From positions 1-10,502 of IMG/VR virus record IMGVR_UViG_3300007533_000518: DNA of 10,502 nt; one strand, 5' to 3'. Both the position numbers and the translations under genes were made by a program. This document shows, piece after piece, positions 1 through 10,502 of the stretch. Positions within the stretch are counted from its first letter, which is position 1. Each line of letters opens with the position of its first letter. The notes beneath the pieces are model-generated. The model was not told the origin of the DNA. It made no database searches and saw only the letters and a program-made list of their open reading frames with translations.

Positions 1-2601
1 AGACCACATATCATAAGCATCTTGGAAGCTACCTAAGTAGAACTGCTTTCCGCCTATATTTATCTTGATACCCAGATTCTTACCACCAAGGAATGGTATC
101 TTCTCTGGAACTACTACATCCCTGGTTATAAAGGGAATCTTCCCACCTTTGAATACAGCAGTAGTTCCAGTTTGAGGGTCTATGAAGGCTTGTGTTAATC
201 TAACTTGCCCTTTCTCAAACATTGTAAGTTCATAAGGAGCATTAGATAATCCTCTAAATAGTCTATTAGTTTCTGCTACTCCACTATAAGCCTTAGGATA
301 CATAGCCTCAGCTCCACCTAGAAAACTTCTCATCTGATTTTCAAGGTAATTGTAAGGCCCAAGGTTAGCGAAGAGCAGCTGCTGCTTTGCTATAGGATTA
401 ACAATTCTTCGCTCAAGAGCCACTAGCTGAGATGAGTATAAGATTCTATCAGCTACCCTGCTATGCCAAGATGCTGCTCTACCAGCTTGCTGCATATATC
501 TAGTGAGTGGACTATGAAGGTTAGCATACCTAGTGGATTCTAACCTATTATATATATTCTTCACAACACCATCAAAAGTATCAGCTCTTACAGATTCTAT
601 AGCCTTCTTGCCTATAGTGTCCTTAAGCTTGATAAGTTTAGATGCCAGATTAGTAACAGATTGTTCAGTAGCCTCCTGACCCAGCTCAGCTATAATCTTA
701 CCAGCAGTTATTCTCTCACCTTGACCACTAAAAGTATCTAGGACTAGTGAGTTTAGTCTAGCCATTCTACTAGTATCAAATACTATATCTGGAGCTATAT
801 CCTTCAGCAATTTAGATAATGCTATATCATCTAGATAGCTAAACTCTAACAAATCAGCTCCTGCTCTTACCCAAGGATTATTGCCTTCCATAGGAGTTTT
901 CAGTACTGCTCTAACAGATGCTTCAACAGTGTCCATAGCATCCTTACCAGTTAGACCCTTACCAAGAACATTCTTAGCATCTCGGAATGTTCTACCAACA
1001 ACTGCATAGAAATCCATTACACTCTGCTTAGCGAAGTTTCTGCCCATCTGCGTAAATGTTCTAGGAATAGTATATCCAGCACCAGTTAACCAAAATGCGC
1101 TCTTAATAGGAGCAGCTACTACTTGCACACCAGCTTTGAAGAGAGCATCAGCACCAGCACAGTATCCTTGCTCAAATGCTACCATAAGAGTGCCAATTCT
1201 AGAACCTGCCCATTTAAGTCCTCTAGGCAGAGCAACCGTAGCTAGCTTTCTTCCTACTGCTGTTACTCCTCCCCATCCTATCCACATAAGAGGGTCATAA
1301 GCAGAGTCAAGTACCATCTTCTTCCACCAAGGAGCATCCCACTCATTAAAGGCTTTAGCATATGCAGACCAGTCAGTTTCACCTTGGCTCTTATAGAACT
1401 CAAAGTGTTTGGTTAGTTCTTTATCAGCATCATCCTCAAAGGCAGCAAATAATCCTGCACCAGAGATTGCACCTACCAATGCTCCTATACCAGCACCAAT
1501 AGCTGTTCCTATACCTGGGATTATAGAGCCAATAGTTCCACCAGCAGCAGCCCCTAGTGCTACGCCATGAGTAGCTCCAGCAGCAGGAGCAGGCAGATTC
1601 ATAATGAGAGCTGCTGAAATAGGTCTACTAATCTTATCCCACCACTTCTGCATCAGCTCTACAGTGGCCATCATAGGCTGAGTAACTATTAGCTTAGCCC
1701 AATCCAGAGGAGCTAGCTCAGGAGTCTCAGCCAGGATAGTCCCAGCCTTTATCAGATTCATCTTAGCAGATTCTAAAGCCCAATCTGTAGCCCTCTGTGA
1801 TAGCCAATCTCGCTGGGACTGAAGCTCCTCATCAGATATTTCCATTTCGCTAAGCAAGCTTCTTACATCTTCATCTGTCATTCCCTCAGGAAGCTCAGCA
1901 ACACCAAAAGCGAAGGATTTAGCTATCTCATCTACAGTGAGATGATGAACTCCCCTTAGCTCCAGCTTAGGAGATGTAAGGACTTCATTGAGTATCTTAG
2001 ACTGAGCATCAAGAACATCTCCCTCATAGCCCTCAGGCAGAACATTTCTCAGTGGCTCTAGTTTACTAAATGTAGCAGATAGCCATGCTCTCTCACCATC
2101 ATTAAGCTCGATTCCTGGAGCTATTAGGCTCAGTACATCATCTACAGTATTAGTCTCATAGAACGGGTCAGAAATGTATAGAGGGAGAGTCTGCATTACC
2201 TCCATCTTCCATCTTATAGACTGCATATTTCTAGATGCAGCATCAAACTCAGCCTGAGCCTCAGCAGTTACAGCTTCCTTAATTTCCTGCCTTTTTCCTG
2301 AAGGCATTAAAGCCTCTATTATATAAGCAATAGGACTCATCTTTAATCCAAATCTGAGGAAGCCTTCGGGAACTATAGATGCTAATAGAGGCTGATTAAG
2401 TTTAGTTTCAGCAGTTTGTAGTCTAGCAAAAGCCTTCTGGTAGCCCAATCCGAATTGCTCAAACTCCTTAGCGAAGCCAGCATAGTACTCTGGAGTTTCT
2501 GTAGGAGCAGGAAGGATAGGAGCCTCTCCACTAGTGTCTGTTACTAGTGATTCTCCTATTTCTCTAGAAGTCAACTTATGCGCACCTTTTATTTCTGGCA
2601 T
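1..2601 (-). CDS. Large (>867 aa, 3'-truncated) probable internal virion/DNA-ejection protein with a glycine-zipper membrane segment
   Basis: Not in the ORF track because it runs off the edge. The ATG at 2601 is 1 nt past the portal stop. By manual translation the frame is open to position 1 (MPEIKGAHKLTSREIGESLV...GSFQDAYDMWS). It contains the GxxxG run GVALGAAAGGTIGSIIPGIGTAIGAGIGALVGAISGAGLFAA (about 1441-1570). Function is inferred from size and position. Confidence 0.8.
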   Translation of the reverse strand, partial: MPEIKGAHKLTSREIGESLVTDTSGEAPILPAPTETPEYYAGFAKEFEQFGLGYQKAFARLQTAETKLNQPLLASIVPEGFLRFGLKMSPIAYIIEALMPSGKRQEIKEAVTAEAQAEFDAASRNMQSIRWKMEVMQTLPLYISDPFYETNTVDDVLSLIAPGIELNDGERAWLSATFSKLEPLRNVLPEGYEGDVLDAQSKILNEVLTSPKLELRGVHHLTVDEIAKSFAFGVAELPEGMTDEDVRSLLSEMEISDEELQSQRDWLSQRATDWALESAKMNLIKAGTILAETPELAPLDWAKLIVTQPMMATVELMQKWWDKISRPISAALIMNLPAPAAGATHGVALGAAAGGTIGSIIPGIGTAIGAGIGALVGAISGAGLFAAFEDDADKELTKHFEFYKSQGETDWSAYAKAFNEWDAPWWKKMVLDSAYDPLMWIGWGGVTAVGRKLATVALPRGLKWAGSRIGTLMVAFEQGYCAGADALFKAGVQVVAAPIKSAFWLTGAGYTIPRTFTQMGRNFAKQSVMDFYAVVGRTFRDAKNVLGKGLTGKDAMDTVEASVRAVLKTPMEGNNPWVRAGADLLEFSYLDDIALSKLLKDIAPDIVFDTSRMARLNSLVLDTFSGQGERITAGKIIAELGQEATEQSVTNLASKLIKLKDTIGKKAIESVRADTFDGVVKNIYNRLESTRYANLHSPLTRYMQQAGRAASWHSRVADRILYSSQLVALERRIVNPIAKQQLLFANLGPYNYLENQMRSFLGGAEAMYPKAYSGVAETNRLFRGLSNAPYELTMFEKGQVRLTQAFIDPQTGTTAVFKGGKIPFITRDVVVPEKIPFLGGKNLGIKINIGGKQFYLGSFQDAYDMWS

Positions 2602-2602
2602 A

Positions 2603-4372
2603 TTATCCTTCTATCTCACCAGCTGACAGTTGTCTTCCAGCAGGAGTTCTTGGAGTTGCTTCGGGTCTTCCCATACCAGCAACCTTAGTAGTAGGCTGCT
2701 CAGGAGCCATAGCCCCTGCTAACTGCTGTAGAGCCATATCCGCCATCATCTCATATAGATTAGCAGCTTCCATATCCTTAGCCTTATCTCTCAGATACGC
2801 TGCTTGTTCTCTATAGTACTGAATCAGAGCTATCATACTATTACTAGGATGTGCCTCGGCCTGGTCAGCTCTTCTTTGTGCTCTCTCCTGTAGCGGGTCT
2901 CCAATATCAGGAAATAACTTTCTAGATACATAGCTATAACTCAACGCAAACTCTGGGTCTAGCATATGAGCAGTAGTAGCCCTTTGGATTAGGTCTCCAG
3001 GTATCTCTATCTCATACTCAGCAGATACTACGCTATAGTCTGGAAGCTTATCAGGATATTTCCAGCCATAAGGTTTGATACCTCTATCTCTTATATCTGC
3101 TAAATCATCATTGTCTATATCAGATAGTGCATCTATTATAGCCTGATGAAAAGGCTTCATTACTTGATTTGCTGAGGCAGCTATCTGGCTCATAACATAA
3201 GCAGTTATCTGTCCAGCTACAGCTCCATGCATAGCCCAACTAACTCCTCCTCTTTGCATCATAGCTTCTAGGTCAAGCTGGGTACTTCTCAATTCTAATG
3301 GTATAGGAGGAGTAGCCAAAAAGTCTACAGAATCATCAGGCCCTCCTCTGAATATAGCCCCACGCTTAAATACATCCTCAGGCTTTACTATAGCATGACC
3401 ACTTCTACTACGCTCAAAGATTCTAGGTTGAGCAGTATCACGCAGAAGTTGTAGTGAGAATGTCCACCATCTATTCCAGGTCTTATAGATATTCTCATTA
3501 GTAGCTATAATAGACTGACCCAGCTCAGCCTTCCATCTATCTCCAGCCACTTTCTGAGTCTGTAGCTTTATTGTAGATGAGTATGTTGGTAGGTAGCCTT
3601 CTGTCAAAGTTCCCATATCAGGCAGACCACCTACAGGAGATATATAAATAGGAATCTTCTTAAATCTTGTAGGCTCAAACTTTACCAGACTATCGCCTAT
3701 GACTATAGCGTTCCATGCTATAGCAGTAAAGGGAAAATTGTCTGCTATCTCCATCCACCAATAGTCGTAAACTACTACATTGCGGCCTACAGTAGCCTGC
3801 CATTGAGGATAGGGACTAGATAATTTCCAGTCATTACGCTTAGCCAGATTAACAGCTTGTTTAGCTGTAGTAGCGTAAATATGAGCTACTTCATCTAATC
3901 CTAGCATATTATCCCACATAGGAAAAACCTCAGCAGGATTAAGAGGCTCCTTATAAGTTCTACTACCATCATCAGAGTTCATGCTGAGCATAGCATACCA
4001 TCCAGTAGCAAGCATGAAGCCTATGAAGGTTCTCAATATGCCTCGCCTAGGATTTGACCTACGAAATGTATTATCAGCATCCTTCCAACTGATATTAAAG
4101 TACCTATTAACCTGAGATACTGCACTTGCTACATTAAGGTCAGACATATCATAGTCTCTGACTCTATGAGGTATCTTGGTATCTAGAAGATGTAGTGTAA
4201 GATTATATAGTGCTCTGGGGTCATTACCCACAAAGGATTCCATCTTCTCCTGCTTAAGCTCGTCTATCATCTCTATAAGTCTATACCACCGCTTCATAGC
4301 CTCATTGCGAGGATTCCAGAAGGTCTTAAGCTCATTACAACGAGATACCACTTCATTTACATTTTGTTTCAT
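2603..4372 (-). CDS. Probable portal (head-tail connector) protein, 589 aa
   Basis: Size, position downstream of the large terminase, helical N-terminus (FWNPRNEAMKRWYRLI), and a low-complexity Q/A/P-rich C-terminal tail typical of portals. The start overlaps the upstream stop (ATGA). Confidence 0.7.
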   Translation of the reverse strand: MKQNVNEVVSRCNELKTFWNPRNEAMKRWYRLIEMIDELKQEKMESFVGNDPRALYNLTLHLLDTKIPHRVRDYDMSDLNVASAVSQVNRYFNISWKDADNTFRRSNPRRGILRTFIGFMLATGWYAMLSMNSDDGSRTYKEPLNPAEVFPMWDNMLGLDEVAHIYATTAKQAVNLAKRNDWKLSSPYPQWQATVGRNVVVYDYWWMEIADNFPFTAIAWNAIVIGDSLVKFEPTRFKKIPIYISPVGGLPDMGTLTEGYLPTYSSTIKLQTQKVAGDRWKAELGQSIIATNENIYKTWNRWWTFSLQLLRDTAQPRIFERSRSGHAIVKPEDVFKRGAIFRGGPDDSVDFLATPPIPLELRSTQLDLEAMMQRGGVSWAMHGAVAGQITAYVMSQIAASANQVMKPFHQAIIDALSDIDNDDLADIRDRGIKPYGWKYPDKLPDYSVVSAEYEIEIPGDLIQRATTAHMLDPEFALSYSYVSRKLFPDIGDPLQERAQRRADQAEAHPSNSMIALIQYYREQAAYLRDKAKDMEAANLYEMMADMALQQLAGAMAPEQPTTKVAGMGRPEATPRTPAGRQLSAGEIEG

Positions 4373-4632
4373 ACTATTACTCCAAGTACTAATGATACTG
4401 CTCCTGCTACAGAGAATATAAAGGTAGCAAATCCTACTACTGTTCCAGCAGAGTAGTAGTGATGCTCCTTCCTAATACTCTCAACAAGCTTATCTGTTGG
4501 TTCATACCTGCTCTGCCAAGGACAGTAACCATCAGCTATTCCCTCTATAAGAGCATGAACCTCATTAGGAGTGCTTAAGAACTCAGGAAGCTTAAGTCCA
4601 CCTAGAAACGCCTTAATACTAGAAAACTTCAT
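4369..4632 (-). CDS. Small protein (87 aa) with a C-terminal transmembrane helix
   Basis: Start re-called to the ATG at 4632 (MKFSSIKAF), which overlaps the protease TGA (ATGA). The C-terminus AGTVVGFATFIFSVAGAVSLVLGVIV is hydrophobic. The stop overlaps the portal ATG. Confidence 0.7.
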   Translation of the reverse strand: MKFSSIKAFLGGLKLPEFLSTPNEVHALIEGIADGYCPWQSRYEPTDKLVESIRKEHHYYSAGTVVGFATFIFSVAGAVSLVLGVIV

Positions 4633-5195
4633 ATTATTACTACTGCTCCTTCTAGCACATAGAATGGGAGGTCTTTGTCCTCCCAGTACCATATCTGGTC
4701 ATTCTGTGGCTCTAGTAGCATAATGTCCCTATTTGGAAAAACAGCCAAGTTGTAAGCATGACCAGCTTGATAATCTAGTACTACTCCAACCTGATTTATA
4801 CCATACTGGTCAGCATGAGCCTTAAAGCTAATAGCAAAGTTACCGCACATAAAGGACTTACGATACTCAAACTGGTCAACCCAATCCCAAGCTACAAACT
4901 TTATAAATCCTTCTTTGTTAGTTAGCCTAAACTCAGGGCCTAGGGGCAGACGGATAACATTAGCTTTGAAGTCAGCTAGTACAGTCTGAACCCACTCAGT
5001 GTCCTTCTCCACAACATACTCAAGCTCTGGTGGAGGAGGATGAGATAGCAAGCTCTCTAAGTATTCAACTCTGATATTAGCGTCATTCAAATCACCTGCT
5101 AGAGTATCTTTCTCTGTATAACACTTAGCAAGCTCACGATTACAGTTCTCGCTACATCCTAGAAAGCTGCATATGAATCCTTTTAATCCTTCCAT
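4629..5195 (-). CDS. Papain/transglutaminase-like cysteine protease (MOA agglutinin C-terminal-like domain), 188 aa
   Basis: Start re-called to the ATG at 5195, with AAGGAGA 7 nt upstream. Motifs FMCGNFA, GHAYN and LLEPQND give a Cys117-His146-Glu162 triad matching the DCDDFA/HAFN/IEPQTD pattern. The N-terminal part is Cys-rich and coiled-coil-like, followed by a HPPPP linker. Confidence 0.65.
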   Translation of the reverse strand: MEGLKGFICSFLGCSENCNRELAKCYTEKDTLAGDLNDANIRVEYLESLLSHPPPPELEYVVEKDTEWVQTVLADFKANVIRLPLGPEFRLTNKEGFIKFVAWDWVDQFEYRKSFMCGNFAISFKAHADQYGINQVGVVLDYQAGHAYNLAVFPNRDIMLLEPQNDQIWYWEDKDLPFYVLEGAVVII

Positions 5196-5211
5196 ACTTC
5201 TATCTCCTTTC

Positions 5212-6894
5212 CTACCATTCATCAGGCCATCCAGCCGAGCCTGCATAACCTCTCTGTACTGACTGAGCATTTCTGCATACTATAGCAATAGCACCAGCGT
5301 CGTGATGGTCATCTGCACCTACTACAAGGATTCCACTCTTGCTCATAGGATTTCTACGGATATTCTTACACTGGCTCCAGAATCGTATGTCCTGACAGTC
5401 TATATGTTCAAGGTGTCTACTAACCTCAGTAACCATATAAGGCTTAGTGGATAGATTAGTCTGCCAGCCTATTGCTTTTACAAGCTTACCAGTTCTTACA
5501 TCCTCCCTATAGTATAGGTCAGGATAATCTCTAAGATGACTAACTATATCTAGATTATCTTCTGGAGCTATTACCGCATTATTGTAGTAATGTGCTACTT
5601 CCTTCATCAGCAGAGCCATTTCCCACTCATCATAAAAGCCTGCTAGTGTAGCACAATGCTGCATAACTGGAGGAATTTCCTTATCATCCTTACTTTTATA
5701 GCCCTCAAGAAAGTGCCATACATGACCTACTGACTCAGACGTTTTCCCTTTGCCTGGGTCTATAGATACTATATAACCTAAACTATCTTCTCTGTCACAC
5801 CAGATATCTAATGTAGCAGATATAGTATCTTTAGTTCTTGAGTCAGTAGCTACTATATTCTTCTGGCTTTTAGCGGGTATGCAGTAGTGTATCTTATCAA
5901 CTATAACATCAGAGCTGTAAGCTTGGTCTCCTGCTACCAGAAAGCAATTCTCATCATCCTCAGGAAATTCCTGCTCAAATAGAAGAACAGTATCGCCACT
6001 TCTTCTAAGGCTAGCTATCTCAGCTTTCTTATACCTTCTCCATCTAAGCTTAGCCATAGCATCCTGTTCAGACATATCATAGATGTCCATGAGAACCTGC
6101 ATTAACAGTACTTCATCTGACTGGATATTAGATAGTGGGTCTTTATTGTCTTCATCTAGGCAGAATGGGTCTTCAGCATACATAATATACTCTGGTTGAA
6201 TATACCAAGGATAGAAGTGGTGCCTATAGACTGATTTGGCTACAGAAGTTCCTTCCTTAGCTGCTCTATACATCTCACAGAAATCATTATCTTCTCCATT
6301 AGGAGTAGATAATACTCTTATTTTAGTTCCAGGCTTAGCAGGAACTCTCTGAGCAGCTGATGCAAACACCAATTCATGCGTTCCTTCAAACCAGAATCCG
6401 TACTCATCTAGTAGTAGATTATGTATTGGCTCTCCCCTACCAATAGTATAGCTCCTAGAGCTAAAAATATACATGATAGAGTAGAATGGATGCTTAGTAT
6501 CCTTAGTTACCCATGTTAACTCCTCAGCGCTTTTATGCTCAAGCTTAGGAATAGTAGGAATCCTTCTTTCCAGAAACTGATGAAACCGCTTGGCTTTGAT
6601 GATAAGACGCTTAGCATTGGTCTCATCATAGCTAATAATAACTGATACAGTTCCACTAAGAGTTATATTATCAAGATAGAAATCAGCTAGATGAAGGGAT
6701 GTTGCCCCTACAGATGCTGGCTTAACATAGATATCTCTAAATGTAGAAGTCTGAAGCATATCTAGCTGAATAGGATTAAGGATGAACGGAACTAATCTTC
6801 GTTCCTTATCCTCTATCTGGAGTAAGGACTCCATAGTGAGCCGTCTATCTGAGAATAAAGCTTCAGCAGCTTCATCCTGCGATATAGTCTGCAT
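5212..6894 (-). CDS. terL: Terminase large subunit, 560 aa
   Basis: Adenine-binding LNPIQ motif, deviant Walker A (VKPASVGATS), Walker B (NLLLDEY), coupling motif (LSTPNG), FEQEFP motif, and RNase H-like nuclease acidic residues (IVSIDPG ... DDHHDA). AGGAG RBS upstream. Confidence 0.9.
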   Translation of the reverse strand: MQTISQDEAAEALFSDRRLTMESLLQIEDKERRLVPFILNPIQLDMLQTSTFRDIYVKPASVGATSLHLADFYLDNITLSGTVSVIISYDETNAKRLIIKAKRFHQFLERRIPTIPKLEHKSAEELTWVTKDTKHPFYSIMYIFSSRSYTIGRGEPIHNLLLDEYGFWFEGTHELVFASAAQRVPAKPGTKIRVLSTPNGEDNDFCEMYRAAKEGTSVAKSVYRHHFYPWYIQPEYIMYAEDPFCLDEDNKDPLSNIQSDEVLLMQVLMDIYDMSEQDAMAKLRWRRYKKAEIASLRRSGDTVLLFEQEFPEDDENCFLVAGDQAYSSDVIVDKIHYCIPAKSQKNIVATDSRTKDTISATLDIWCDREDSLGYIVSIDPGKGKTSESVGHVWHFLEGYKSKDDKEIPPVMQHCATLAGFYDEWEMALLMKEVAHYYNNAVIAPEDNLDIVSHLRDYPDLYYREDVRTGKLVKAIGWQTNLSTKPYMVTEVSRHLEHIDCQDIRFWSQCKNIRRNPMSKSGILVVGADDHHDAGAIAIVCRNAQSVQRGYAGSAGWPDEW

Positions 6895-6906
6895 ATAAGC
6901 TCCTAC

Positions 6907-7011
6907 TTACCTTTTCTGAGGTTTCCCTATAGGCCCTTTACCTCCTCCTCTTCCTAGTCCTATTCCTGCTCCCTTACTCCTAATTCTACTTCCAGGACAT
7001 CTTCTAGCCAT
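6907..7011 (-). CDS. 34-aa basic Gly/Arg/Lys-rich microprotein (MARRCPGSRIRSKGAGIGLGRGGGKGPIGKPQKR)
   Basis: Below the ORF-track cutoff. GGAGGAG lies just upstream of the ATG at 7011 and the TAA is at 6907-6909. It fills the gap between the holin-like gene (8-nt overlap) and the terL RBS. Confidence 0.7.
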   Translation of the reverse strand: MARRCPGSRIRSKGAGIGLGRGGGKGPIGKPQKR

Positions 7012-7273
7012 GACTCCTCCCATTCATTCTTTGTAAAGTTGTTACTAACTCTTGCAAAGCCTTAGTATTCTCCTCTCTAGTATTCTGCTCGCTCTCAATC
7101 ATACCTGCCAACTGTTTCCTATCTTCCCTAAGTCTATTCTCATGCCCAGAGCATATATCCGCTATCCTTCTTTCACTAGATTCTCTATCTCTCCTATACA
7201 TCAGAAAGATTATGCCAGCTAGGATAGCTACAGCTCCCCCATTGGCTAGTGCTTCGATGATAGCTTGCTCCAT
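7004..7273 (-). CDS. BhlA/UviB-like holin candidate, 89 aa
   Basis: A single N-terminal TM segment (IIEALANGGAVAILAGIIFLMY) is followed by a basic stop-transfer (RRDRESSERR) and a coiled-coil tail, which is the BhlA/UviB architecture. TAATG coupling to the upstream gene. Confidence 0.55.
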   Translation of the reverse strand: MEQAIIEALANGGAVAILAGIIFLMYRRDRESSERRIADICSGHENRLREDRKQLAGMIESEQNTREENTKALQELVTTLQRMNGRSHG

Positions 7274-7455
7274 TATCTTTTTCTTAGCTTAAGTGTCACT
7301 GGAGTTCTAGAAGCAGGCTTGCTAGTACTCTGCCTCTTTCTAGTCTCCCTGCCTACACTTCTAGGTTCTTTCCTTCCAATACGACTAGCTTGAGCTCTTC
7401 TGATATTTCGTCTAGATGCTTGAGCCTGCTTAGCTGTCCTTGCTCTTCTCACCAT
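7273..7455 (-). CDS. 60-aa Arg-rich basic protein, probably nucleic-acid binding
   Basis: Very high Arg/Lys content, two AQASR units, and a stop overlapping the next ATG (TAATG). Confidence 0.65.
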   Translation of the reverse strand: MVRRARTAKQAQASRRNIRRAQASRIGRKEPRSVGRETRKRQSTSKPASRTPVTLKLRKR

Positions 7456-7990
7456 CGGAAGTTACTCTTATCCTATCAGTCCTAGTTATCTCAACACTCC
7501 TAAGCTTATCCTGATTATTGGTTATAAACTCAGAAAAGTTCCACCCATCACTGCTAATACCTCTCATAGCCTGCTCAAGGATTTGTAGCTGTTGAGGTGT
7601 GTATGCAGTACGGAGTTTTAGGAGATATTCATGCTCCTGTCTAGTCATTATCTCCTCTTCTATAGATTTCCTGAGGATTCTATAATCTTTCTCAAGAACT
7701 AGCTTGAAGTTGCGAAAGAAGTCTAGCTCTATATATTCCTTGCTGAGCTCCTTCCTTATTTCGGGTATCCTTAGTTCAAGCTGGCTAAATGCAGTATCCC
7801 TACGTTGCTCATCTAGCCAGGTCATATCTAGACCCAGCATATATAGAGCTTCTTCGATAGTAATTCCACATGCTAGATAGCCAAAGTATTTAGCTCTATT
7901 ATCATCTCTACGCCAGGGAAGGAGAGTCTGAGCTATAGCAACTTCAGATGGAGTATCTGAGTTAGGAGGCACAGTGGTAGGTTCTATCAT
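7430..7990 (-). CDS. Probable terminase small subunit (HTH-type), 186 aa
   Basis: First gene of the packaging operon. The HTH-like segment YFGYLACGITIEEALYMLGLDMTWLDEQRRDTAF is followed by long helices. Start re-called to the ATG at 7990 because 8008 lies inside the promoter spacer. Confidence 0.6.
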   Translation of the reverse strand: MIEPTTVPPNSDTPSEVAIAQTLLPWRRDDNRAKYFGYLACGITIEEALYMLGLDMTWLDEQRRDTAFSQLELRIPEIRKELSKEYIELDFFRNFKLVLEKDYRILRKSIEEEIMTRQEHEYLLKLRTAYTPQQLQILEQAMRGISSDGWNFSEFITNNQDKLRSVEITRTDRIRVTSDGEKSKDS

Positions 7991-7998
7991 ATCAGTAT

Positions 7999-8027
7999 AG
8001 TATAACATTGTGTACTAGTGTTGTCAA
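7999..8027 (-). promoter_or_regulatory. Sigma70/sigmaA-type promoter P1 (packaging/structural operon)
   Basis: TTGACA (8027-8022), 17 bp, TATACT (8004-7999), with an extended -10 TG (TGT-TATACT). Confidence 0.8.
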
Positions 8028-8074
8028 GGATACAAATACATATTATTATTTATTGTCATTAGTGAATAAGATGG

Positions 8075-8103
8075 TTGACAACTATATCCTGATATGATAT
8101 AAT
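8075..8103 (+). promoter_or_regulatory. Perfect-consensus sigma70/sigmaA promoter P2 (zinc-finger arm)
   Basis: TTGACA (8075-8080), 17 bp, TATAAT (8098-8103), with an extended -10 TG. An AT-rich UP-like tract lies at 8031-8055. Confidence 0.88.
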
Positions 8104-8109
8104 ATGGTT

Positions 8110-8304
8110 ATGAAGTGTGAGATATGTGGAAGAAGTAATCTAACTGCTAGAGAGCTAGCAGTACATAGAAAGCTTTTCCATAATGAACAGCCTCAGCAGA
8201 TTAGTCCTATGTCTGCTAAGGTATGTCCTGACTGTGGAGCTGCACTAGTTCTTCAGGAAGGTTGTGAGTATTGTAGCATATGTGGATACAGTAAATGTGG
8301 ATAA
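8110..8304 (+). CDS. 64-aa double zinc-binding protein: C2H2 finger plus NrdJ-like C-terminal zinc ribbon
   Basis: C-x2-C-x12-H-x4-H (CEIC...ELAVHRKLFH), then CPDCGAALVLQEGCEYCSICGYSKCG. The ATG at 8104 abuts the -10 box, so the ATG at 8110 is the likelier, leaderless start. Confidence 0.8.
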   Translation: MKCEICGRSNLTARELAVHRKLFHNEQPQQISPMSAKVCPDCGAALVLQEGCEYCSICGYSKCG

Positions 8305-8369
8305 GATGATAAGTATAAAAGAAATATAATTATAATTCCGTATCAGATAGAACTAGGAACATTGAGCAA

Positions 8370-8552
8370 ATGTTAGCTAAGTTAATATGCAAGTTATTCA
8401 AGCATAGATGGCTCTTTGAAATAGGAGTAATAGACCCGCCCAGTAAGAGCATCTGTCATATACCTAGTAGTGAAATTAAACTCATATTCTGTACTAGGTG
8501 TGGAAAGATTATATATGATAGAGAGGAGATACTAAAATTGACATCTGGCTAA
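8370..8552 (+). CDS. DUF1660-like small phage zinc-binding protein, 60 aa
   Basis: KLICKLFKHRW ... CTRCG matches the recalled family pattern KLxCKLFGHKW...CxRC. Confidence 0.6.
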   Translation: MLAKLICKLFKHRWLFEIGVIDPPSKSICHIPSSEIKLIFCTRCGKIIYDREEILKLTSG

Positions 8553-9007
8553 CTGTCTGTCGTAAAACTGTTCCTAAGTGTGCTTACTGCGGAGAACCTA
8601 TACACTTGGGGGAGATAATGGTAGCTGGCAGGATATGGAAGACTAGAGATGGAAAGGTAAGGAGATTTGTAAAGAACTTAAGATGGCACGGACAGAAGAT
8701 AGTAAACCCAGAAGAGCCTCCAATATGCTGCTGGCTAGAAGCAGGTCTAGAGTATCTACGAACTCACCCAAAAGAAGAGACAAGAGGAAGAAAGCAGCTT
8801 CAGCTAACAAAAGCACAAAAAATAGAAAGGTCAAAGATATCAAGACAAAGGGCAAGGTTAGTCCAAAAACTAAAGACACTAATGGAAGTTCCCCTAGCAA
8901 ATCAGGAGCAAAAGGATATAAACGATATAATAAAGATAGGAAGCCAGATAGAACAGTTGAAAGAGAGGATAATACCACTAGGAGGACTGCCTCCGAACTG
9001 GGAATAG
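8537..9007 (+). CDS. Zinc-finger plus basic coiled-coil protein, about 156 aa (probable ATT start)
   Basis: The frame is open from 8522. Extending upstream of the TTG at 8606 adds DIWLTVCRKTVPKCAYCGEPIH, which supplies a CxxC to pair with the later WH...CCW. GAGGAG (8523-8528) is 8 nt before the ATT at 8537. Confidence 0.65.
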   Translation: MDIWLTVCRKTVPKCAYCGEPIHLGEIMVAGRIWKTRDGKVRRFVKNLRWHGQKIVNPEEPPICCWLEAGLEYLRTHPKEETRGRKQLQLTKAQKIERSKISRQRARLVQKLKTLMEVPLANQEQKDINDIIKIGSQIEQLKERIIPLGGLPPNWE

Positions 9008-9351
9008 AATGGATAGGAGATTATTGCCCAGACAATAAACCCCATAACTTAATATGTATATATGAGTTGCATGGCGGAAGCTTATTTAGGTGTAGTAATT
9101 GTAGAAAGTATATATGGCTTCCTACATTTATTAAGGATGCTGCTAAGCTCGATAGTCTCATTGACAGCTATGGAACTACTACTGGGTATTGCAAGTATCT
9201 TGATACTAATAGAAGTGCTAAGATGCTAGTAGCTAAGCTGCAAGACCTATGGTATGCTAGAGCTAAGATTAAGGATGATAGGAAGTTTACTAAATTGGTA
9301 GTTAGAACTATGGAAGACAGCGAGTATGATAGGAGGAACAATGGCACTTAA
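8998..9351 (+). CDS. Small zinc-ribbon protein, about 117 aa (start uncertain, CTG candidate)
   Basis: The protein-like part of ORF 8683..9351 begins at GIEWIGDYCPDNKPH...FRCSNCRKY (C-x5-H...CxxC). GGAGG is at 8981-8985, with in-frame CTG at 8998 or ATA at 9004. Confidence 0.55.
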   Translation: MGIEWIGDYCPDNKPHNLICIYELHGGSLFRCSNCRKYIWLPTFIKDAAKLDSLIDSYGTTTGYCKYLDTNRSAKMLVAKLQDLWYARAKIKDDRKFTKLVVRTMEDSEYDRRNNGT

Positions 9352-9799
9352 AGAAACCGTTACTAAGGAAGAAGTACTAAAATTTGGAAGCGTAGCAAAG
9401 ACTCTAGTGGCAAGACATAACGTAACTTCACCTATGAGACTAGTTATTATAGCTTCTACCGAGAATCCAGATAGCAGCCATACTGTTCTATTTGATTTTG
9501 AGGAGGAGCCTGCTCAGGAATTAGCACCGAAGCAACCTCGCAGGCCAGTCCCTATACCACCTGAGCCAAGAATAGCAGTAGTAAAAATCCCTAGAGGTGT
9601 AAATGCTAAGGCTCTGGAAGGATTCATCAATCAGCTTGCCAATACTATAAAAGGCCAGGTGTTTGTTGTACCTATAAACTTTGAAGTGCTGCTGGGCAAT
9701 ACTGCTAAAGAAGAGGTGGAGAAGATACATAACCAGATACACAAGATGCTTGATATAAATCCAGAATCAGATGAGCCACCAGGGATAGCTGGTAAGTAG
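9341..9799 (+). CDS. Hypothetical phage protein, 152 aa
   Basis: AGGAGGA (9331-9337) favours the ATG at 9341 (MALKETV) over 9326. Two apparent domains are joined by a Pro-rich linker. Confidence 0.75.
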   Translation: MALKETVTKEEVLKFGSVAKTLVARHNVTSPMRLVIIASTENPDSSHTVLFDFEEEPAQELAPKQPRRPVPIPPEPRIAVVKIPRGVNAKALEGFINQLANTIKGQVFVVPINFEVLLGNTAKEEVEKIHNQIHKMLDINPESDEPPGIAGK

Positions 9800-9969
9800 C
9801 AATTTTACAAATCCAAATTCTGCGAAGAGACATAGTTATAAAGTATCCTCACCAAAGTTGCCTGACCGTATGGGTGGTGTTCTTTCATTTAGGACATAAC
9901 CATATGGGAGCAATATCCTTAGGAATAAATCATACAAGAACAGGCTTATCAAAACATACCGAGCAAGGC

Positions 9970-9981
9970 GAACATATGTTC
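9970..9981. promoter_or_regulatory. LexA-type SOS box 1 (GAACATATGTTC)
   Basis: Perfect GAAC-N4-GTTC palindrome ending 2 bp before the -35 of P3. Confidence 0.75.
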
Positions 9982-9983
9982 TA

Positions 9984-10012
9984 TTGACAAACGGTTCTCG
10001 ATATGGTATGAT
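9984..10012 (+). promoter_or_regulatory. Sigma70/sigmaA promoter P3
   Basis: TTGACA (9984-9989), 17 bp, TATGAT (10007-10012), with an extended -10 TG. The RBS AAGGAGGT follows at 10019-10026. Confidence 0.85.
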
Positions 10013-10031
10013 ATACCAAAGGAGGTGTGCC

Positions 10032-10205
10032 ATGACAGGGCAGGAACTAAATACCGAGTGGTGTCGCCGAATGGACATCACAACTAAAAGCATGATACAA
10101 TGCCGAGAACAGGGTGCTGTATCACAAGAGTACCTCGATGGGTTCATTGAGGCAGTTAAAACGAGCATGAACCTATTGGAGGCAATCCTCACCGAGCAGC
10201 AATAG
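10032..10205 (+). CDS. 57-aa hypothetical protein, putatively SOS-regulated
   Basis: AAGGAGGT lies 5 nt before the ATG at 10032 (MTGQELNTEW...). The track start at 9984 is the TTG of the -35 box and is not credible. Confidence 0.75.
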   Translation: MTGQELNTEWCRRMDITTKSMIQCREQGAVSQEYLDGFIEAVKTSMNLLEAILTEQQ

Positions 10206-10213
10206 GATGATTA

Positions 10214-10238
10214 GAACATATGTTCCGAGCAAAGGTTC
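10214..10238. promoter_or_regulatory. LexA-type SOS box 2 (GAACATATGTTC, 10214-10225) with an adjacent degenerate box (GAGCAAAGGTTC, 10227-10238)
   Basis: The 12-mer is identical to box 1, intergenic, and upstream of P4. Confidence 0.7.
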
Positions 10239-10272
10239 TGTTAATTTCCTAGAACATTATGTCAACTATCCC

Positions 10273-10301
10273 TTGACAACTCAAACCGAGTATGGTACAA
10301 T
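10273..10301 (+). promoter_or_regulatory. Sigma70/sigmaA promoter P4
   Basis: TTGACA (10273-10278), 17 bp, TACAAT (10296-10301), with an extended -10 TG. Confidence 0.85.
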
Positions 10302-10309
10302 CTGATTAC

Positions 10310-10379
10310 ATGATGGAATCACAGACCATCATTGGTACTGGTAAAGTGGCAACAGTACCGGCACCTTAACAATTAAATA
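10310..10379 (+). promoter_or_regulatory. Structured 5' leader: two hairpins followed by a boxA-like antitermination element
   Basis: Stem ATGATGG/CCATCAT (10310-10332), stem GGTACTG/CAGTACC (10334-10359), then GCACCTTAACAATTAAATA (10361-10379), which resembles boxA GCTCTTTAACAA. Confidence 0.55.
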
Positions 10380-10396
10380 AAGAAACGGGAGGTACA

Positions 10397-10502
10397 ATGG
10401 CAAACGGAAAACAGAAGCAAGCACAAGCCGAACCACAGGATTCAGTTGCACAGGAGACAGTCACTGAGGAACAGCCATCACAAGAGCAACTCAAATCCCA
10501 AC
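10397..10502 (+). CDS. 5' end of a hypothetical protein with a Q/E-rich N-terminus (truncated)
   Basis: GGGAGGT RBS, then the ATG at 10397. MANGKQKQAQAEPQDSVAQETVTEEQPSQEQLKSQ is open to the window edge. Confidence 0.75.
   Translation, partial: MANGKQKQAQAEPQDSVAQETVTEEQPSQEQLKSQ

Follow-up and report, generated by a model that had tools for sequence, protein, structure and literature searches.

A MOA-Type Cysteine Peptidase and Its Tail-Anchored Membrane Partner as the Possible Enzymatic Core of a Phage Lysis Cassette

The Gene Pair

IMG/VR contig 3300007533_000518 was analysed over positions 1–10,502, and this whole stretch of 10,502 nucleotides is referred to here as the window. It carries a pair of overlapping genes encoding a cysteine protease of 188 amino acids (aa) and an 87-aa membrane protein. 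The pair and the neighbouring terminase- and portal-like genes all lie on the minus strand, as determined from the open reading frames (ORFs) and by reading the sequence, and the minus-strand block forms a single tightly packed late operon with a sigma-70-type promoter at its head. A first-pass annotation of the window had proposed that the pair may be part of a lysis module directed against a protein surface layer (S-layer) or peptide cross-links, for example in a peptidoglycan-poor host; the lysis function has gained support from the gene context in related phages, presented below, and the proposed form of envelope and host has not. The features of the pair are listed below.

5204–5209, minus strand: Shine-Dalgarno sequence AAGGAG, 8 nt 5' of the protease ATG (sequence read)
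4632–5195, minus strand: coding sequence of the 188-aa MOA-type papain-like cysteine peptidase, TGA stop codon at 4629–4631 (ORF and sequence)
5049–5195, minus strand: N-terminal region of the peptidase, residues 1–49, with Cys9, Cys14, Cys18 and Cys25 and a helix at residues 16–49, then a Pro-rich linker (AlphaFold model)
4632–5033, minus strand: predicted catalytic domain, residues 55–188 (domain model with mean predicted local distance difference test score, pLDDT, of 88.3 and predicted template modelling score, pTM, of 0.85)
4845–4847, minus strand: codon of the catalytic Cys117, aligning with MOA Cys215
4758–4760, minus strand: codon of His146, aligning with MOA His257
4710–4712, minus strand: codon of Glu162, within an invariant Glu-Pro-Gln motif, aligning with MOA Glu274
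4629–4632, minus strand: ATGA overlap of the protease stop and the 87-aa gene start (sequence read)
4372–4632, minus strand: coding sequence of the 87-aa tail-anchored membrane protein, stop codon at 4369–4371 (ORF and sequence)
4372–4452, minus strand: predicted C-terminal transmembrane segment of the 87-aa protein, residues 61–87 (hydropathy; position conserved in 17 homologues)
4369–4372, minus strand: ATGA overlap of the 87-aa gene stop and the portal-like gene start (sequence read)

An alternative protease start, at an ATG located 75 nt farther upstream (5270), would fall within the terminase gene, and the 188-aa form is the one with which homologues align at their N-termini. The main elements that the first-pass annotation had described for the pair were all recovered: the codons of the Cys117-His146-Glu162 triad were read at their positions and the triad is conserved in relatives, the Cys-rich helical stalk at the N-terminus is predicted with high confidence, and the ATGA overlap and the hydrophobic C-terminal residues are those expected for translational coupling to a C-terminally anchored protein. 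A terminator scan also revealed a 7-bp GC-rich hairpin at 4665–4685 (minus strand), inside the 3' end of the protease gene and some 35 nt upstream of the ATG of the partner; the hairpin may have arisen by chance or may modulate the coupling.

The Protease Belongs to the MOA Branch of the Papain Fold

A word-based search yielded 53 homologues of the protease, while a profile of the family produced 1,635 matches (E ≤ 1e-3) among 1.84 billion cluster representatives at 50% identity, and nearly all of the matched representatives are unannotated proteins of 110–240 aa. For cultured phages, a tblastn search with the protease against 50,697 phage records gave no match. The window protein alone scored 14.4 bits against Pfam Agglutinin_C (E 0.053), which is under the cut-off of 26.8 bits; 34 of 47 homologues match this family (E ≤ 0.01, best 1.8e-5), 25 of the 47 match Lectin_C_term, and weak Pfam matches to Gln_amidase, a papain-fold toxin family, were obtained for 14 of them. 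No lysin family in Pfam or PHROGs was matched by the protease.

The family profile also matched entry 2iho, the crystal-structure sequence of the mushroom lectin MOA (Marasmius oreades agglutinin), with an E value of 2.9e-5, and in the resulting alignment Cys117, His146 and Glu162 correspond to Cys215, His257 and Glu274 of MOA, residues that were established experimentally for that enzyme (PMC8244254). Moreover, Gln164 corresponds to Gln276, and Tyr111 is located at the position of Trp208, which is occupied by Tyr in 134 and by Trp in 8 of 150 representatives of the phage family.

A model of the full-length 188-aa protein gave no significant Foldseek match in the PDB, because the long N-terminal helix dominated the alignment. 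For the model of residues 55–188 the only PDB matches with E ≤ 0.001 were PSL1a and MOA (template modelling (TM) scores of 0.66–0.75, and 0.71–0.75 for the matches at E about 1e-5), and thus both profile and structural comparisons lead to the Agglutinin_C fold that had been named earlier as one to be checked. The next PDB match was PNGase, with a transglutaminase fold (E 0.076, TM score 0.35), and it is the sole match of that fold; the kinship with PeiW/PeiP or transglutaminase-like proteases that had been suggested initially is not supported. Among predicted viral structures in BFVD, the best match was a protein of Pyrobaculum filamentous virus 1 (UniProt A0A140F3M5; E 8e-12, TM score 0.88, 28% identity). 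Sequence comparisons and structure prediction concur in identifying the 188-aa protein as a soluble cysteine peptidase with Cys117-His146-Glu162 as its catalytic triad and in assigning it to the MOA/PSL1a type, which forms a distinctive branch within the papain fold.

A survey of papain-like peptidases from 2023 reclassified PF18021 and PF18022 as papain-like and did not treat viral members (PMC10318531), and in our literature search no paper was found linking a MOA-type domain to phages or to lysis. What is new here is that a MOA-type domain, from a known fold family, is used in a conserved phage cassette together with a new membrane partner.

Catalytic Residues and N-Terminal Region

Alignments of 47 and of 54 relatives show no variation at Cys117, His146 and Glu162. 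The complete triad is present in 137 of 141 diverse representatives of the 50%-identity clusters in which all three positions are covered and, position by position among 150 representatives, Cys is retained in 146, His in 143 and Glu in 140. The full set of invariant residues in the 47 relatives comprises Cys117, Asp141, His146, Tyr148, Asn149, Glu162, Pro163, Gln164 and Asp166. The match to the MOA fold, combined with the residue-by-residue alignment, suggests that the triad residues are spatially clustered. Independent evidence that the catalytic Cys is essential comes from intein-like inserts of about 250–360 aa, with LAGLIDADG and helix-turn-helix matches, which sit exactly before this residue in P0073, P0122, P0137 and P0167; the Cys is the first residue after the insert, and the insert of P0137 ends in His-Asn. 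Inteins typically settle in indispensable active-site motifs.

The N-terminal helix is predicted with block-mean pLDDT values of 79–97 across residues 11–50 of the full-length AlphaFold model, and the helical stalk probably mediates dimerisation. This region is missing from homologues of 155–159 aa. In two loci (L022, 9844–10017; L023, 9820–9993) the helical part constitutes an ORF of its own, of 58 aa, overlapping the start of a catalytic ORF of 157–158 aa, an arrangement that could stem from splitting of the gene, from a frameshift site or from faulty assembly. In a more distant group, exemplified by L030, a 63-aa helical ORF overlaps the protease start.

A hydropathy scan of the protease did not reveal a signal sequence or other export signal, and an N-terminal hydrophobic anchor is present in at least two representatives of the family (P0176 and P0183). 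A lipoprotein reading, raised by a Leu-Leu-Gly-Cys motif near the N-terminus of several homologues, was rejected because the preceding segment is only 8–13 residues long and includes charged residues and because many homologues lack the motif.

The Membrane Partner

The 87-aa protein carries one hydrophobic segment, residues 61–87, at its extreme C-terminus (mean Kyte-Doolittle value 2.39), and this is preceded by a polar domain in which Glu24, His26, Gly31, His58, Tyr59 and Tyr60 are invariant among 17 homologues. These homologues were gathered from the protease loci, and a word-based homology search gave one relative only. Neither the protein nor a profile built from the 17 sequences matched any entry in Pfam, PHROGs or the PDB.

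Toxin-immunity pairs usually have this layout, in which a small gene comes after a protease gene and is translationally coupled to it, and the gene pair could, in principle, encode a membrane-associated protease for host takeover, exclusion or counter-defence whose substrate would be a protein of the host or of an incoming phage (a receptor, transporter or defence effector, for example), with the 87-aa protein acting as an inner-face anchor or as an immunity or inhibitor partner. The protease has no export signal, its closest characterised relatives are true proteases (PMC8244254), 14 of the 47 homologues weakly match the Gln_amidase toxin family, and the conserved polar domain of the partner looks more like a binding or metal site than a pore former, all of which would fit such a function. 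We nevertheless consider it unlikely, since it leaves unexplained the holin-shaped gene that almost always lies directly upstream, the amidase fusion encoded beside a holin-like gene and the absence of another recognisable lysin from two nearly complete genomes (see the following sections); moreover, genes for takeover and exclusion are as a rule early or lysogenic ones, whereas in the window this pair belongs to the late structural operon.

A Mobile Cassette in Related Phages

About 40 loci were collected and searched with profiles built for the cassette genes. Each of the 16 distinct loci with a close homologue of the protease also has a homologue of the partner downstream of the protease, mostly overlapping or adjacent to it and, in two loci, separated from it by one to two small genes; profile searches did not detect a partner beside the distant homologues L008, L011 and L030–L038. 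Directly upstream of the protease, 11 of the 16 loci encode a conserved two-helix protein of 49–112 aa with a charged C-terminus, which often overlaps the protease start, and in three further loci an unrelated small multi-pass protein takes this place, bringing the total with a holin-shaped upstream neighbour to 14 of 16. The genes of the cassette usually overlap by a few bases. None of the holin-shaped neighbours matches a PHROG holin family. Holins are commonly replaced by unrelated small membrane proteins.

Some loci show additional features. A small soluble protein of about 80–90 aa with a shared motif is encoded in or beside the cassette at L006:4008–4268, L026:3758–3997 and L043:968–1240; it recurs in three unrelated phages, in one case beside the amidase fusion, and may be a fourth, optional cassette component. 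In L025 the partner gene is present in two copies (10561–10812 and 11412–11669), and the same locus carries at 1569–1646 (minus strand) a tRNA with the anticodon CTA, called by ARAGORN as tRNA-Pyl, which may be an amber suppressor.

The genomic position of the cassette is variable. In the window, L001, L003 and L010 it is found between terminase and portal; L004 has it 3–5 kb ahead of the packaging genes, L006, L016, L019 and L023 have it immediately ahead of the terminase genes, and in L022 and L024–L027 it is surrounded by tail-like genes. Given this variation the cassette behaves as a self-contained module, and its location between terminase and portal, to which the first-pass annotation had attached meaning, is incidental.

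The same observations bear on whether the enzyme is a virion-assembly protease that processes a structural protein, such as a scaffold or the giant protein of 1,500–2,100 aa encoded in these phages, or is itself packaged for ejection; a role in head maturation had been offered initially as the alternative to lysis. The arrangement in the window, where the pair is translationally coupled to the portal gene, and in the three loci sharing its position would be in accordance with this, as would the finding that no other proteases were detected in these genomes. It is, however, difficult to reconcile with the location of the cassette in other phages, 3–5 kb ahead of the packaging genes or amid tail-like ones, and with its constant company of small membrane proteins, which play no part in capsid maturation. 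Furthermore, known prohead proteases are of the serine or herpesvirus type and are encoded between the portal and capsid genes, and no match to them was found in Pfam, PHROGs or with Foldseek. We regard an assembly function as improbable.

Holin Candidate and Neighbouring Genes of the Operon

The genes flanking the pair within the operon are as follows.

7007–7273, minus strand (7004–7273 with stop): 89-aa membrane protein, weak holin candidate (transmembrane segment and phrog_2429)
5215–6894, minus strand (5212–6894 with stop): large terminase (phrog_2, E 3.5e-13)
2603–4372, minus strand: 589-aa portal-like protein (assigned from position and size)

The 89-aa protein, whose gene lies 1.8 kb upstream of the protease gene, has a transmembrane segment at residues 4–27 followed by a helical tail, as judged from hydropathy. 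The BhlA-like holin proposed in the first-pass annotation is consistent with this topology and with the sole family match, a marginal one to phrog_2429 (E 1.6e-3), a group of BhlA type; it is not reinforced by Pfam, where none of seven homologues has a match to Holin_BhlA or any other family at E ≤ 1. The co-occurrence of cassette and holin in relatives that had been put forward for checking is evident for the holin-shaped upstream genes, whereas the BhlA-like gene stays with the terminase gene rather than with the cassette. Both the window and L010 carry the 89-aa protein beside the terminase. Adjoining the gene for this protein, at 7276–7455 (minus strand), a very basic 60-aa protein is encoded, about one third of which is Arg or Lys; the counterpart in L001 has 70 aa and a reversed gene order, and the protein might bind DNA as a packaging factor or act on membranes as a cationic peptide. 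A gene for a 192-aa protein is also located upstream of the pair in the operon.

In tblastn searches, the terminase matched annotated terminases at only about 25% identity, and these derived from podophages of Proteobacteria and from uncultured phages. The 589-aa portal-like product has no family match in Pfam or PHROGs, and a gene of the same size occurs in the portal position in L001, L003 and L010. Directly after it starts an ORF of more than 867 aa (1–2601, minus strand) which exits the window. This ORF carries a membrane-like glycine-zipper segment at residues ~340–400, and its matches to PHROGs labelled tape measure, tail lysin and endolysin fall exclusively on this segment. The giant proteins of 1,549–2,088 aa at the same place in relatives have no Pfam domain, of lysins or of any other kind, and the giant protein following the portal may be an internal or ejection protein.

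Links to the Cell Wall

A connection to cell-wall degradation is suggested by P0080 (392 aa), where an Amidase_2 domain (E 1.8e-10) is fused to an intact protease domain and the gene is followed by a 63-aa two-helix gene. In P0142, a weak SLT match lies in front of the protease domain.

Pfam and PHROG searches gave no muralytic domain for any ORF of the window, in agreement with the initial observation that a recognisable muralytic endolysin is lacking there. For two nearly complete related genomes, one of about 40 kb (L041, L004 and L042) and the other of about 44 kb with the gene order of the window (L001/L002, L045 and L048), the Pfam matches on record likewise include no lysin domain; they comprise RecT, capsid, PolA, deaminase, methylase and similar families. 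Nor was a lysin domain present among the 25 of 26 matched families listed for three further phages, in which 37 ORFs surrounding the cassette were covered. Relatives of roughly 40 kb include IMG/VR 3300018080_000314 and 3300031586_000089.

Host

Sigma-70-type sites number 40 in the window compared with 24.6 ± 5.3 in shuffled sequences, and two of those found in the promoter scan lie back to back in the divergent intergenic region around 8000–8100.

8027–7999, minus strand: sigma-70-type promoter, TTGACA, 17-nt spacer and TATACT with extended -10 TG (11/12 matches)
8075–8103, plus strand: sigma-70-type promoter with extended -10 TG (12/12 matches)

The -10 hexamer of the plus-strand promoter ends one base before the ATG annotated at 8104, and translation may instead begin at the Met codon at position 8110, the mRNA being leaderless. 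This gene (8104–8304, plus strand) is a small, stand-alone one for a 66-aa protein with two Cys-x-x-Cys pairs, which matches phrog_23565 (E 3.4e-7) and resembles the zinc-ribbon tail of phage ribonucleotide reductases.

The consensus sigma-70 promoters in the window, together with the genes for PolA, RecA, DnaB, RecT and a sigma-70 factor encoded by relatives, point to a bacterial host. The only two matches in a collection of species genomes, L010 and L011, are on contigs binned into archaeal metagenome-assembled genomes (MAGs), labelled 'uncultured archaeon' and Candidatus Nitrosopelagicus. These labels are doubtful, for L010 because it shares its gene order with the window, whose promoters are bacterial. 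An archaeal host, suggested by the two MAG matches and by the structural match to an archaeal virus, was rejected for the window on the basis of its sigma-70 promoters and the bacterial-type genes of relatives. The same promoters and genes, with the amidase fusion, also speak against an archaeal host and against the peptidoglycan-poor one, such as a member of the Dehalococcoidia, that the first-pass annotation had envisaged.

These results are also relevant to the idea of a PeiW/PeiP-like protease lysin acting on the S-layer or another non-peptidoglycan envelope of such a host. In its favour, the relatives that have been characterised are genuine proteases, Pyrobaculum filamentous virus 1, whose host possesses an S-layer only, supplies the best structural match among viral proteins, the two genome-collection matches were binned into archaeal MAGs, and no muralytic domain was found in these phages. 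Set against this are the consensus sigma-70 promoters at the operon heads, the RecT, PolA, RecA, DnaB and sigma-70 factor genes of relatives, the fusion of one relative to a peptidoglycan amidase domain, the lack of any sequence or fold likeness to the transglutaminase-like enzymes of PeiW/PeiP type, and the phage-like character of the MAG contigs, which are possibly misbinned. Little probability can be assigned to an S-layer lysin for this phage.

A Model for Protease-Mediated Lysis

The reading that we prefer is that the protease and its partner constitute the enzymatic core of a phage lysis cassette, with an enzyme of a new type and a bacterial host, and we estimate its probability at about one half. 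It is supported by the holin-shaped neighbours, by the one Amidase_2 fusion and by the two nearly complete genomes without a recognisable lysin. The position of the cassette in the window is not odd in this respect, given that in phage T7 lysis genes are interleaved with packaging genes, the holin and spanin genes alternating with those of the terminase. Papain-fold domains, including CHAP and NlpC/P60, are common as endolysin peptidases.

In this model, the protease would accumulate in the cytoplasm late in infection, given that it carries no signal sequence, and would be co-expressed with the packaging and portal genes. A holin-type membrane protein would then open the inner membrane, allowing the protease to reach the envelope; the candidate for this step is the upstream two-helix protein in most relatives and, in the window, only the 89-aa protein. 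Within the envelope, the protease would cut peptide bonds that hold the wall together, for which the stem peptides or cross-links of peptidoglycan are the likeliest targets and wall-tethering proteins less likely ones. The 87-aa protein would serve as a dedicated partner, most likely holding or regulating the enzyme at the membrane or else forming part of the hole-forming or timing machinery, and as a tether or inhibitor it could keep the enzyme harmless until triggering. Activation of MOA requires Ca2+ or Mn2+ and a dimer (PMC8244254), the metal site being binuclear and located at the dimer interface. If activation of the phage enzyme were similar, one could speculate that the low Ca2+ level of the cytoplasm would provide a built-in safety switch and the N-terminal helix the dimer.

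Several considerations weigh against a lysis function. The phage family is known from sequence and predicted structure alone, and MOA and PSL1a, its sole characterised relatives, cut proteins rather than peptidoglycan. No CHAP or NlpC/P60 structure was present among the PDB matches obtained with Foldseek, and the 188-aa protein carries no wall-binding domain. Searching with the fusion protein showed that the amidase fusion is confined to a single cluster from two short contigs, and the SLT match of P0142 is weak (E 4e-3). The phages are, moreover, so divergent that even their terminase and portal proteins often escape Pfam, which makes the missing lysin weak negative evidence. The window lacks the upstream two-helix gene, as does its nearest relative L010, and the conserved polar domain of the partner sets it apart from typical holins, with no analogue known among lysis systems. 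Finally, the existence of a homologue in an archaeal virus, whose host lacks peptidoglycan, implies that the substrate of the family need not be peptidoglycan.

In a broader scheme, cysteine proteases of MOA type would be a widespread and hitherto unrecognised class of egress enzymes of viruses of both bacteria and archaea (Pyrobaculum filamentous virus 1) that cut protein components of the envelope, such as S-layer proteins or the tethers between wall and membrane, and not the glycan or stem peptide of peptidoglycan, with the conserved partner acting as a new type of membrane-bound activator or timer. A review from 2024 stated that an S-layer-degrading enzyme had not yet been identified in archaeal viruses (PMC10791045). 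We view this scheme as unlikely.

Comparison with Known Systems

With the protease (dimerisation) domain of MOA and PSL1a, which are fungal chimerolectins (Agglutinin_C PF18021, Lectin_C_term PF18022), the phage protein shares a common variant of the papain fold in which the Cys-His-Glu triad and the Glu-Pro-Gln motif align, although sequence identity is only 16–20%. Unlike MOA, it has no ricin-type lectin domain and carries instead a Cys-containing helical stalk; the catalytic Cys of MOA is flanked by acidic residues, in place of which the window protein has Met116 and Gly118, Asp141 and Asp166 are invariant residues peculiar to the phage family, and the setting is viral with a membrane-protein partner.

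Holin-endolysin cassettes show the same layout as that seen in relatives of the window phage, in which the gene of a soluble hydrolase comes after that of a small multi-pass membrane protein, the two being tightly coupled and expressed late, and their membrane component is likewise exchanged for unrelated small proteins in some phages. Moreover, one relative pairs the protease domain with Amidase_2, as is often the case for the CHAP domain of endolysins. The differences are that the catalytic domain falls outside known lysin families and is not accompanied by a wall-binding domain, that in the window no holin-like gene is adjacent, and that the conserved third, tail-anchored protein is without counterpart in known lysis systems.

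A0A140F3M5, encoded by Pyrobaculum filamentous virus 1, resembles the phage protein in being viral, small and made of a single domain, and is annotated as an Agglutinin C-terminal domain-containing protein; its source, in contrast to the window phage, is an enveloped filamentous virus of a hyperthermophilic archaeon. No described function was found for it in the literature. PeiW and PeiP, encoded by methanogen proviruses, are pseudomurein endoisopeptidases, cysteine-dependent enzymes which viruses use to open the cell wall (PMC10791045), but their hosts are archaea with pseudomurein, whereas the window phage has bacterial promoters.

Significance

If the lysis function is correct, the endolysin repertoire would gain both a new catalytic domain, the papain fold of MOA type that has hitherto been known from mushroom toxins only, and a new conserved membrane partner, and it would become clear how divergent phages, most of whose genes match nothing, lyse their hosts. 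A role would also be provided for a family of about 1,600 clusters at 50% identity that is without functional annotation. The enzyme, being small, single-domain and probably inhibited by E-64, would be of interest for enzybiotic work. Finally, since an archaeal virus also encodes a homologue, one may ask whether protein envelopes are opened by related enzymes.

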